From positions 380,134 through 444,133 of the forward strand of contig NIVC01000177.1 of assembly GCA_002269645.1 (NCBI GenBank): a stretch of DNA of 64,000 nt, read 5' to 3'. Source of the stretch: Macrostomum lignano. Lineage: Eukaryota. Of the stretch, positions 18,001 through 27,700 are shown piece by piece. The position numbers were made by a program, and so were the translations under genes. The notes below the pieces were generated by a model that was given only the letters and a program-made list of their open reading frames with translations, ran no database searches and was not told where the DNA came from. The first letter of the stretch is position 1. Each line of letters begins with the position of its first letter.

Positions 18001-18964
18001 CTATCTATCTATCTATCTATCTATCTATCTATCTATCTATCTATCTATCTATCTATCTATCTATCTATCTATCTATCTATCTATCTATCTATCTATCTAT
18101 CTATTATCTATCTATCTATCTGTCTATCTATCTATCTATCTATCTATCTATCTAACTATCTATCTATCTTTATCTATCTATCTATCTATCTATCTAACTA
18201 TCCATCTATTATCTATCGATCTATCTATCTATCTATCTATCTATCTATCTATCTATCTAACTATCTATCTATCCATCTATCTATCTATCTATCTAACTAT
18301 CTATCTATCCATCTATCTATCTATCTATCTATCTATCTATCTATAAGCATGTCTCGACTTTCAGCTCTACCTCCCATGCAGTCTGCTCGTAGTCCTCAGC
18401 TGGGTCGGATTCTGGATCAATCGCGAGGCTACATCGGACAGGGTAGCCCTGAGCACAACAACAGTGCTCACGATGACCTTCCTCGGCATGGACAACCGGC
18501 AGGACCTGCCCAGGGTCAGCTACGGGACCGCTCTGGACTGGTACGTCGGCATGTGCTTCGCTCAGATCCTCGCCACCATCATTGAGTTCGCCTCTGTGCA
18601 CTACTTCACCAAGCACGGCAGCGGAGAGACTCACGTCACCCTGGAGACCGACGGCGCTCCTGAGAACGGCGGCCTTCGCTACGGACAGGCGACGCCACGG
18701 ATGCAGCGGCCGCAGCCTCCTCAGCTGCCCGACCTCCGAGCTGCTGCTCAGGTCGCTGACAGGCCGCCAAGTCACGACAGCTGTCCGTACGCCTTTCTCA
18801 ACTGCATCAAGGGCAGCTCAAAGTACAAAGAGCTCAAGCTGATGCGCTCGACAAAGACTGTCAACTCGGTTAGCAGGATCGATGAGATCTCCAAGATTCT
18901 TTTTCCAGCGCTGTTCGCCCTTTTCAACCTGGGGTACTGGACTCTGTACCTGAAGGTGCTGTGA
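12077..18964 (+). CDS. Cys-loop ligand-gated ion channel subunit, GABA-A/GRD-like, copy 1 (459 aa). Exons 12077-12749, 14031-14137, 18365-18964
   Basis: Signal peptide, LLDNYDKNLRP, DIWKPDTYFVN, Cys-loop CPMNLLKFPMDTQVC, pre-M1 RRHMGYFLLQ, M1 LYLPCSLLVVLSWVGFW, M2 SDRVALSTTTVLTMTF, M4 [21 protein letters not shown]. Junctions cgca|gtgagt, ccag|ag, gcag|gtgagt and ttcag|ctc give 1380 nt in frame. Confidence 0.93.
12860..13930 (+). repeat. 45-bp minisatellite in intron 1 of channel copy 1
   Basis: Unit ttgagttgatggtgtggcttctctgctggagttgcttccgtgtct; source of ORF 12874-13899. Confidence 0.95.
14510..14980. repeat. 18-bp repeat ctgtttcaccctctcact, intron 2 of channel copy 1
   Basis: Direct inspection. 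Confidence 0.9.
16212..16755. repeat. 58-bp purine-rich minisatellite, about 9 near-identical copies
   Basis: ggggagggagacagagagaagggagttattgagagggagatagcgaggagagagaaac. Confidence 0.92.
17310..18345. repeat. ~1-kb (TATC)n / GATA microsatellite ending ~20 nt before the exon 3 acceptor of channel copy 1
   Basis: Direct inspection. Confidence 0.97.
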
Positions 18965-19241
18965 CTGGAGTGTTCTGTGCTCAACCTGGGGTACTGGACT
19001 CTGTACCTGAAGGTGCTGTGACTGGAGTGTTCTGTGCTCAACCTGGGGTACTGGACTCTGTACCTGAAGGTGCTGTGACTGGAGTGTTCTGTGCTCAACT
19101 TGGGGTACTGGACTCTGTACCTGAAGGTGCTGTGACTGAAGTGTGCTGTGCTCAACCTGGGGTACTGGACCCTGTACCTGAAGGTGCTGTGACTGGAGTG
19201 TGCTGTGCTCAACCTGGGGTACTGGACTCTGTACCTGAAGG
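18924..19241 (+). repeat. 57-bp tandem repeat made of the terminal codons, stop and first 3'UTR bases of channel copy 1 (6 units, the first being the real coding end)
   Basis: aacctggggtactggactctgtacctgaaggtgctgtgactggagtg recurs every 57 nt (18926, 18983, 19040 and so on). Confidence 0.95.
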
Positions 19242-24762: not shown

Positions 24763-27700
24763 ACAGGGCAAACAGCGCTGGAAAAAGAATCTTGGAGATC
24801 TCATCTATCCTGCTAACCGAGTTGACAGTCTTTGTCGAGCGCATCAGCTTGAGCTCTTTGTACTTTGAGCTGCCCTTGATGCAGTTGAGAAAGGCGTACG
24901 GACAGCTGTCGTGACTTGGCGGCCTGTCAGCGACCTGAGCAGCAGCTCGGAGGTCGGGCAGCTGAGGAGGCTGCGGCCGCTGCATCCGTGGCGTCGCCTG
25001 TCCGTAGCGAAGGCCGCCGTTCTCAGGAGCGCCGTCGGTCTCCAGGGTGACGTGAGTCTCTCCGCTGCCGTGCTTGGTGAAGTAGTGCACAGAGGCGAAC
25101 TCAATGATGGTGGCGAGGATCTGAGCGAAGCACATGCCGACGTACCAGTCCAGAGCGGTCCCGTAGCTGACCCTGGGCAGGTCCTGCCGGTTGTCCATGC
25201 CGAGGAAGGTCATCGTGAGCACTGTAGTGATGCTCAATGCTATTCGATCAGATGTAGCTTCCCGATTGATCCAGAATCCGACCCAGCTGAGAACTACGAG
25301 CAGACTGCAGGGCAGGTACAGCTGCAAGGTCAGCGATTCAGCGTTTGTTTCGAATTCTTTTGCGAAGTTTCTTTTTGAGACCATTTAACCATGGCCTAGT
25401 TTGGTTAACCCAGAGGTTGGCAAACTTCGACCCTCAGGCCACATGCGGCCCCTCTTTATCCGGCCCTCGGGTTTGTGAACAATATCATAATAATAACAAT
25501 CCGGCTGGCGCACAAGGTTTATATCTCTTCTCAGATCTCTTTTTCTCCTCTCCCCTCTCCTCTCTTCCCTTTCTTTCCTCATCCTTGCAGCCATGACAGC
25601 CGAAGTAAGAGTCACCTTCGCATGCATGCTTAATGAGCTTGAATTAAACAATTATAAATATGGCGACGTATGCAAGTTAAGATGGATCCGTCAGCTTCTA
25701 CTGCTGAAGTAGCACCTAGGGCACTAGAATTTCGTCCAGGCCATTTTCATGTATAGCGTTATTTAGTGGTGACTCCATCAGCACAGATTTAATGAGCTTC
25801 CGTCCGATGACAGTCCCCCCCCAAGGACTATTTCGCTTAATTCACTTCATCGGCCTGCAGCTCTCGAGGCAGCTGGAAAAGAAGAGGGATTCGGTGCTAA
25901 TCTGGGTCGCTGACAGGAAAGATTTCTCCTGCTGCATGCTGGACGCCATGTGGCTCTCATTTCATTTCAACAGGAGAATGAAGCAGGGATCTAGGAGTCT
26001 GAATTTTAACTAGATGGAATAAAATTCACTGGATTAAGCTGTCTCGCCGCGCGCGTGCAGTTTGTCGGTTTTCCAATCCAAAACTGGCAACGAAATGAGA
26101 TTCCAAGAAACGAGATTTACCCGGTAATATTCAAGTGGACGATAGTAGAGTTTGGGAGCGCCTATTCCAATATTCCTGATAAATTTCGCGCAAGTTGTAT
26201 CTCGGCTCACGGCCACTTTAGCGATCCAATGCATCGTCAAACTCTGCAGGCTTTGGGAACCTTTAGCTTGCCGAAAGCACCGCTGAGTACATGAGTTTTA
26301 TGTGCGTTTTGTTCGTTGCACCTTGAGTCTGAGCTGTCACCAGACTTCCACTCATTTTCATCAACTACTCACCTGCAGTAGAAAATACCCCATGTGCCGT
26401 TCAAACTCGAAGTGACACATCAACGCCGAGAAGGAGCCTCGTCTGCCCATTCGAAGCGTGTCACGGCTGATGGGAATTCCTGTTGGCCCGGTTGATAAGC
26501 GGAACTTGTGACAAACCATCATCGCTAACTGCTCTGATTAACTGGGAGACAGAATTCTGATTCGCAACTCAAGCAGAGAAGCCACACCATCAACTCAAAC
26601 CCACGGAAGCAACTCAAGCAGAGAAGCCACACCATCAACTCAAAGACACGGAAGCAACTCCAGCAGAGAAGCCACACCATCAACTCAAAGACACGGAAGC
26701 AACTCAAGCAGAGAAGCCACACCATCAACTCAAAGACACGGAAGCAACTCCAGCAGAGAAGCCACACCATCAACTCAAAGACACGGAAGCAACTCAAGCA
26801 GAGAAGCCACACCATCAACTCAAAGACACGGAAGCAACTCAAGCAGAGAAGCCACACCATCAACTCAAAGACACGGAAGCATCTCCAGCAGAGAAGCCAC
26901 ACCATCAACTCAAAGACACGGAAGCAACTCAAGCAGAGAAGCCACACCATCAACTCAAAGACACGGAAGCAACTCAAGCAGAGAAGCCACACCATCAACT
27001 CAAAGACACGGAAGCAACTCAAGCAGAGAAAGAGAAGCCACACCATCAACTCAAAGACACGGAAGCAACTCAAGCAGAGAAGCCACACCATCAACTCAAA
27101 GACACGGAAGCAACTCAAGCAGAGAAAGAGAAGCCACACCATCAACTCAAAGACACGGAAGCAACTCAAGCAGAGAAGCCACACCATCAACTCAAAGACA
27201 CGGAAGCAACTCAAGCAGAGAAGCCACACCATCAACTCAAAGACACGGAAGCAACTCAAGCAGAGAAGCCACACCATCAACTCAAACACACGGAAGCATC
27301 TCCAGCAAAAAAGCCACACCATCAACTCAAAGACACGGAAGCAACTCAAGCAGAGAAGCCACACCATCAACTCAAAGACACGGAAGCAACTCAAGCAGAG
27401 AAGCCACACCATCAACTCAAAGACACGGAAGCAACTCAAGCAGAGAAGCCACACCATCAACTCAAAGACACGGAAGCAACTCAAGCAGAGAAGCCACACC
27501 ATCAACTCAAAGACACGGAAGCAACTCAAGCAGAGAAGCCACACCATCAACTCAAAGACACGGAAGCAACTCAAGCAGAGAAGCCACACCATCAACTCAA
27601 AGACACGGAAGCAACTCAAGCAGAGAAGCCACACCATCAACTCAAAGACACGGAAGCAACTCAAGCAGAGAAGCCACACCATCAACTCAAAGACACTGAA

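Follow-up and report, generated by a model that had tools for sequence, protein, structure and literature searches.

How does the end of a conserved ion channel gene come to be repeated in tandem behind the gene itself, and what does this mean for the channel? The question is raised by a 64-kb stretch of the Macrostomum lignano assembly (contig NIVC01000177.1; called the window here), in which two genes predicted to encode GABA-A (gamma-aminobutyric acid type A) receptor alpha-like subunits of the Cys-loop family, genes 1 and 2, lie tail to tail, and in which each of them runs into an array of a 57-bp unit. A previous sequence-only reading had described this repeat as a satellite born from the last codons and stop codon of the gene, with the capacity to rewrite the C-terminus of the channel.

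The unit consists of 12 sense codons, a stop codon and a trailer of 18 nt (39 + 18 = 57), and it reads AAC CTG GGG TAC TGG ACT CTG TAC CTG AAG GTG CTG TGA before the 18 nt. The coding end and the stop were thus described correctly beforehand, whereas the trailer had been put at about 16 nt. Tandem Repeats Finder (TRF) called array 1 on the + strand at 18924-19242 (period 57, 5.6 copies, 97% matches, score 603) and array 2, inverted, at 19711-24760 (period 57, 87.5 copies, 91% matches, score 7963). When split into units, array 1 (18926-19261, +) yielded six units of 57 bp and array 2 (19711-24760, -) 88 units of 55-64 nt, which together make 94 units and 5.4 kb. The opposite orientation of the arrays and the estimate of 85-90 units behind the second copy agree with these data; the six reiterations claimed behind the first copy do not, as the six units found include the functional one and leave five behind it. 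Reading and translation of both last exons, of 200 codons each, confirmed that the real gene end lies in unit 1 of either array: unit 1 of array 1 (18926-18982) and unit 1 of array 2 (24760-24704) hold the functional last 12 codons and stop of genes 1 and 2, respectively, as had been proposed.

A 33-nt core of the unit, searched with up to three mismatches, gave 93 matches in the window, every one of them within 18932-24754, against an expectation of 0 from 100 shuffles; no unit was found outside the locus in the window. There were also no matches among the JGI metagenome contigs, a result that says nothing on the source genome. At the distal end of array 1, unit 6 is intact up to CTGAAGG, and its last 26 nt are a degenerate remnant in phase with the unit (KVP-TAA), the score of which was reached by 4 of 500 shuffles in an in-phase similarity test. 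A seventh, more degenerate unit past 19266 is not supported (230 of 500 shuffles reached its score), and neither are decayed units at the far end of array 2 (81-158 of 500 shuffles).

The repeat is a minisatellite: its period of 57 falls in the range of some 10-100 bp, its units follow one another head to tail, and interspersed variant units and higher-order structure occur in the array. The term satellite was generous: the tandem array is real, but its two stretches of 0.3 and 5 kb are of minisatellite size, in a window with 30-35% tandem repeat, and a satellite in the strict sense, which would call for very long arrays or a high abundance in the genome, mostly at many loci or in heterochromatin, is not demonstrable. 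An array of terminal-exon cassettes was considered and rejected, since the units lack an acceptor context, begin in the middle of the helix (at the N of FNLGYW) and encode the same peptide in 84 of 92 cases.

The direction of the process, from exon to repeat or from repeat to exon, can be read from the homologues. In its coding part, the unit has the motif FNLxYWxxYL of the transmembrane helix M4, which is present in vertebrate GABA-A alpha-1, where the HMMER alignment pairs the M4 regions, and the homologues of Ridgeia, Lamellibrachia, Cichlidogyrus, Plakobranchus, Sinanodonta and Tegillarca have F/L-N/Q-x-x-Y-W/S-x-x-Y at the same place. After this motif these proteins end in short, unrelated tails, so that the tail behind M4 is not conserved. 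No tandem array over the stop codon was found at three homologous loci (L001, L002 of Ridgeia and L003 of Lamellibrachia), all of which encode M4 once; L001, on the European Nucleotide Archive (ENA) contig with P0015 and 90% identical over 29 aa, has a differing gene structure, again without an array. Because the M4 motif is ancient and the homologous loci have a single M4 without an array, the repeat came from the exon. Its derivation from the last codons, the stop and the adjoining trailer is therefore well supported by comparison with homologues, which bears out the origin proposed in the sequence-only reading, and among the loci compared the array appears to be lineage-specific. Loci L002 and L003, both from siboglinids, are likewise rich in tandem arrays.

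The locus is best explained, with a probability of roughly 80%, as a near-neutral, exon-seeded minisatellite of the 3' untranslated region (3'UTR), held in two inverted paralogues by concerted evolution. A 57-bp segment over the M4 end, the TGA and 18 nt of 3'UTR would have been duplicated in tandem by slippage or unequal exchange, with subsequent expansion. Gene conversion or inverted-repeat recombination between the paralogues would keep the two arrays on one consensus, and array 2 would have been enlarged by multi-unit, higher-order duplications. Both the slippage or unequal-exchange mechanism and the selective near-neutrality are inferred, and the array is most likely a harmless by-product of a repeat-prone genome.

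The gene models were built with homologues as tblastn probes and with splice sites read from the sequence. In gene 1 (+ strand), exon 1 (12077-12749; from its open reading frame (ORF), tblastn and Pfam) holds the start codon, the signal peptide and the ligand-binding domain with the Cys-loop CPMNLLKFPMDTQVC; exon 2 (14031-14137), delimited by acceptor and donor sites and reading phase, holds the pre-M1 segment and the start of M1 (...RRHMGYFLLQ); and the last exon (18365-18964, stop TGA at 18962-18964), identified by translation, Pfam and alignment to GABA-A alpha-1, encodes the end of M1, M2, M3, the loop and M4. Gene 2 (- strand) was modelled in the same way, with exon 1 at 28124-28796 (tblastn and splice-site reading), an exon 2 at 26373-26479 that is strongly diverged from that of gene 1 (splice-site reading and codon comparison), and a last exon at 24722-25321 with its stop at 24724-24722 (translation and Pfam).

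Both genes are thus intact: each has three exons and an in-frame coding sequence of 1380 nt for 459 aa, which includes a signal peptide and a Cys-loop and has no stop other than the terminal one. The assembled 459-aa model matched Neur_chan_LBD (E 2.6e-48) and Neur_chan_memb (E 6.4e-33) in Pfam, and the last exon alone matched Neur_chan_memb in gene 1 (E 3.6e-34) and gene 2 (E 4.3e-35). The Cys-loop read from the sequence has 13 residues, and M1-M4 are present, as in Cys-loop ligand-gated ion channels. The best solved relatives in the Protein Data Bank were the GABA-A alpha-1/2/3 subunits (E about 4e-95 to 1e-94, with M4 aligned), and the closest database proteins, with 46-50% identity, were 'GABA receptor alpha-like' sequences of siboglinid annelids, molluscs and a monogenean. 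The host genes are accordingly assigned as putative GABA-A alpha-like Cys-loop receptor subunits, for which gating by GABA and anion selectivity are predicted by homology.

The native stop of each gene lies in unit 1, nearly every later unit keeps a stop of its own, and 57 nt correspond to 19 codons. Therefore, the arrays belong wholly to the 3'UTR, and no copy number alters the 459-aa protein; as the protein is unaffected, a repeat over a conserved transmembrane helix is tolerated. The stop is followed by a C (UGA then C; 18962-19021 and 24724-24665), and read-through would add 19 residues, namely LECSVL or LKCAVL and then the 12 M4-like residues of the next unit, ending at the UGA of that unit.

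Between the arrays lies a unique spacer of 449 bp (19262-19710), which has no further copy in the window; its interpretation as a fragment of a transposable element was dropped for that reason, as far as the window allows. A poly(A) signal scan located AATAAA in the spacer on the + strand at 19526, for gene 1, and on the - strand at 19602-19597, for gene 2, and no AATAAA or ATTAAA inside the arrays. In the simplest reading, the spacer would house the poly(A) sites of both genes back to back. The predicted 3'UTRs would then measure about 0.6 kb in gene 1 and about 5.1 kb in gene 2, the latter made up nearly entirely of decoy gene ends. When folded in silico, an RNA over 18924-20030 formed a hairpin that is nearly perfect over about 320 bp (-742 kcal/mol), and no Rfam match was obtained in 18000-25600. 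Such a hairpin could form on transcription through both arrays, as a structural possibility and not as evidence of function.

The unit catalogue of array 2 contains 27 distinct variants, with lengths of 55, 57, 60, 63 and 64 nt. All the variation in unit length falls in the 18-nt non-coding part (16, 18, 21, 24 or 25 nt), which is GTGCT-rich and slippage-prone and occurs in 15 haplotypes. The 39 coding-derived nucleotides have 10 haplotypes, and their sole indel is a 4-nt insertion at one stop. The wild-type peptide is encoded exactly by 84 of the 92 interior units, and the only amino-acid variants among these units affect the penultimate residue, where V is replaced by M (KML*, n=6) or by L (KLL*, n=1); one interior unit has lost its stop (TGC plus the 4-nt insertion). 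Among the variants predicted beforehand, KML* and KLL* were thus recovered; no unit reading WIL is present in the catalogue of either array, where GGATAC is a synonymous G-Y variant.

Within the 36 coding-derived nucleotides of the interior units, five types of change are synonymous (CTG>TTG, CTG>CTA, GGG>GGA, GGG>GGT and ACT>ACC) and two are non-synonymous (GTG>ATG and GTG>CTG). This ratio of 5:2 has a binomial P of 0.02-0.05, depending on the transition bias assumed, with n=7. Codon positions contrasted by hand, of which 3 of 12 third ones and 2 of 24 first and second ones are variable, gave no significant difference.

Array 2 has a marked internal order. Adjacent units are identical in only 2% of cases, and unit identity peaks at lags of 3, 5, 8 and above all 17 units (25%). 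The sequence of 22188-23169, a block of about 980 bp, is found again at an offset of 976 bp (23164-24145) with three mismatches (99.7%), and other offsets show repeated blocks of 400-650 bp with up to 100% identity. This higher-order structure is, as read from the assembled array, the signature that multi-unit unequal exchange would leave. As an assembler could miscount such near-identical internal blocks, the figure of 88 units needs read support. The sizes of six and 88 units in the two paralogues, taken from one assembly, denote instability over evolutionary time.

The presence of the same array behind both genes raises the question of how the two copies are related. Genes 1 and 2 are convergent paralogues, with arms of about 7-9 kb, and their codon-by-codon comparison revealed five blocks of divergence, expressed below as synonymous (dS) and non-synonymous (dN) divergence. 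Codons 1-13, at the start of the signal peptide, have a dS of about 2, and the signal peptides differ. Codons 14-224, for the ligand-binding domain, have a dS of 0.04. Codons 225-292 extend from pre-M1 to M2, taking in exon 2 and the opening 32 codons of the last exon, and 59 of their 204 nt are different (dS >2, dN 0.17). Codons 293-431 are identical over 417 nt (18461-18877 on the + strand versus 25225-24809) and form a gene-conversion tract close to the arrays, and codons 432-459, the last 28, have a dS of 0.22. Intron 2, of 4.2 kb in gene 1 versus 1.05 kb in gene 2, has no detectable homology between them.

Several observations accompany this comparison. The diverged pre-M1 to M2 segment takes in pore-lining residues of M2 (V/I and T/I), and the paralogues are homogenised throughout save for the signal peptide and the pore region. 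Intron 2 of gene 1 consists mostly of tandem arrays, and that of gene 2 has none; a (TCTA)n array of about 264 copies (17309-18344) ends 20 nt before the acceptor of the last exon of gene 1. A 45-bp minisatellite is found in intron 1 of both genes, in mutually inverted orientation (12837-13933, 24 copies; 26564-28037, 32.5 copies), where it begins about 85 nt past exon 1; arrays common to both copies are not special to the gene end.

The mosaic of divergence and identity rules out a fold-back chimera of the assembly, and its identical tracts amid saturated divergence point to gene conversion or exchange between the inverted copies. Near-identity tracts within anciently diverged sequence are what characterizes an inverted paralogue pair with gene conversion, and sequence exchange between the paralogues is regarded as demonstrated by this comparison of the two copies. 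The history behind the mosaic may be read in either of two ways: the duplication could be old, with the conversion tracts laid down later, or it could be young, with the diverged segment converted in from an unseen third paralogue. Under both readings a recent exchange is needed, as the two arrays have the same consensus and variants in common (ACT/ACC, GGAG/GAAG). Accordingly, the exchange seen in the mosaic sharpens, and does not settle, the earlier alternative of an array older than the duplication or one spread by conversion. If the M4 end of either gene crossed over once with a unit inside the other gene's inverted array, the spacer would be inverted and that array split between the genes. 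This single-crossover route would be an economical way to place the same array behind both copies, and it predicts polymorphism in the orientation of the spacer.

Other explanations of the locus were weighed against the near-neutral, exon-seeded minisatellite. Capture of an already existing satellite by the gene, which would make the channel C-terminus satellite-derived, is scarcely credible: it accounts for the bare fact that the coding sequence ends inside a repeat unit, but the coding part of that unit is the conserved M4 motif, which vertebrate GABA-A alpha-1 shares with annelid, mollusc and flatworm homologues, the homologous loci have a single M4 and no array, and the unit occurs nowhere else in the window. 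An assembly artefact, in which the inverted pair would be a chimeric fold-back or the 5-kb array an expansion made by the assembler, is very improbable. Long-read assemblers do misjudge palindromes and kb-scale near-identical blocks such as those of array 2 (99.7-100% over 400-980 bp); however, the arms are no mirror images, given the 59 of 204 nt that differ in exon 2 and the start of exon 3, the non-homologous second introns and the different signal peptides, and array 2 is built of 27 ordered variants and not of a run of identical units. The existence of the array is thus safe, and only its exact count is provisional.

Two further proposals would give the arrays a function, and each of them seems unlikely. 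If the array were a selected reservoir of spare C-termini, exchange would move interior units to the first position and keep them translatable, which is consistent with the wild-type 12-residue peptide in 84 of 92 interior units, with the five synonymous versus two non-synonymous types, and with the coding-derived 39 nt being almost free of indels when all the length variation and 15 haplotypes fall in the 18-nt remainder. On the other hand, homogenisation by itself keeps units alike, and the protein variants on offer (V to M, V to L) sit in the tail behind M4, which homologues do not conserve. If the arrays instead fed a regulatory RNA, read-through would produce antisense or hairpin RNA for small interfering RNA (siRNA) or Piwi-interacting RNA (piRNA) tuning both paralogues, or the 88-unit 3'UTR would tune the stability of the gene 2 mRNA. 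The opposed arrays, 449 bp apart, and the near-perfect hairpin predicted from them fit this idea, and the first canonical poly(A) signal for gene 2 comes only after array 2; yet with AATAAA on both strands of the spacer normal termination would separate the arms, Rfam gave no match, and the same genome makes arrays everywhere without apparent function. That the arrays are not inert, either as a C-terminus reservoir self-renewed by recombination of the inverted arrays with the M4 exon ends, which would repeatedly change the unit that terminates each gene and in which one inversion-type crossover could also account for the array behind both genes, or as a source of read-through hairpin or antisense RNA that co-regulates the paralogues, is likewise improbable. 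Three points do weigh against the near-neutral reading. Copy number, 3' end use and neutrality are all read from the sequence of a single assembly; the confinement of the unit to the locus was checked in the window and the JGI metagenome contigs only; and the synonymous excess, together with the restriction of indels to the non-coding part, hints at constraint on the interior units where pure neutrality would have none. This constraint is taken as a hint only because about seven independent mutational events are involved, the non-coding part is intrinsically slippage-prone and the codon-position contrast was not significant; the slippage-proneness of the GTGCT-rich part may explain the distribution of indels well enough.

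Some features of the locus are known from other systems. Variable number tandem repeats (VNTRs) at gene ends include the 40-bp VNTR in the 3'UTR of human SLC6A3 and the last-exon VNTR of CEL. The arrays described here resemble such gene-associated minisatellites in their unit of tens of bp, their head-to-tail extension over 0.3-5 kb in a transcribed gene end, their interspersed variant units and their growth by slippage or unequal exchange. In contrast to them, the unit straddles the boundary between coding sequence and UTR and carries 12 conserved helix codons plus the stop, making a string of decoy gene ends, and the array stands behind both members of an inverted paralogue pair. No published repeat unit spanning conserved terminal codons and the stop was found in the searchable literature, although such a unit may be buried in VNTR catalogues.

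Palindromes with gene conversion from arm to arm are known from the human Y chromosome, and the present pair shares with them the tail-to-tail copies, the short unique spacer and the tracts of identity amid diverged sequence; its arms, however, reach only about 7-9 kb, are strongly mosaic and terminate on their inner side in arrays of six versus 88 units. Inverted duplicates of target genes also give rise to hairpin-RNA or endogenous siRNA loci, such as the Drosophila hairpin RNAs (hpRNAs) and Su(Ste)/Stellate. The gene-derived inverted repeats found here could base-pair if they were co-transcribed, and they differ in having poly(A) signals between the arms; the analogy is formal only. Satellite DNA can in theory arise from any sequence, and ribosomal DNA (rDNA) spacers and transposable elements are listed as seeds (PMC5615363). 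Compared with satellites seeded by rDNA spacers or by transposable elements, including those of the miniature inverted-repeat type (MITE-like), the locus likewise has a functional seed followed by higher-order repeats and homogenisation, but the seed is an exon end still in use, and the scale is that of a minisatellite, with 94 units at the one locus seen.

The surroundings of the two genes are exceptionally rich in minisatellites, with 47 tandem arrays covering 35% of the window, or 30% when this locus is excluded. The process that generates repeats is therefore commonplace here, and since the stop-codon boundary is a cost-free place for a duplication over conserved coding sequence, an array at an exon end is to be expected, if rarely noticed. 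Arrays also accompany the neighbouring genes. A third, distantly related Cys-loop receptor gene on the - strand (33570-40954; Neur_chan_LBD E 3.9e-25; M4 at 33641-33570) has a 20-bp minisatellite of 12 copies from about 45 nt past its stop (33270-33516) and, in an intron, a CT-rich array of a 13-bp unit extending over 2.5 kb (36379-38936). Upstream, on the + strand, an Aquarius-like (intron-binding protein) helicase gene (969-10519; last long ORF 8246-10519) contains in-frame 30-bp repeats at 8967-9351 that encode decapeptides in an acidic tail, that is, a coding minisatellite. An ORF with a fibrinogen C-terminal domain (52654-53533; PF00147, E 3.2e-34) is directly preceded by an array of 9.5 copies of a 31-bp unit with 99% identity, and an exon of a SNF2-family helicase (61430-61918; PF00176, E 1.2e-42), ERCC6-like by eye, is flanked by minisatellites at 60712-61352 and 61919-62237.

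For the channel itself, the analysis indicates no physiological consequence, as judged from the predicted protein. Unequal exchange that rewrites the C-terminus would be possible in principle and small in scope: the mechanism put forward in the sequence-only reading is valid but unproven, with 84 of 92 interior units wild type and the variants placed in the non-conserved tail. For annotators, up to 87 decoy gene ends in a 3'UTR will give rise to spurious protein matches, mis-called terminal exons and mis-mapped reads. The inverted arrays of six and 88 units beside a 417-bp conversion tract make a compact system in which exchange between inverted minisatellites could be measured. The locus is also an unusually clean case of the birth of a tandem repeat, as the exact bases of the seed are known and the direction of origin is established by the deep conservation of M4, and it illustrates that at the stop-codon boundary a repeat may extend over a highly conserved stretch of coding sequence without harm to the protein.

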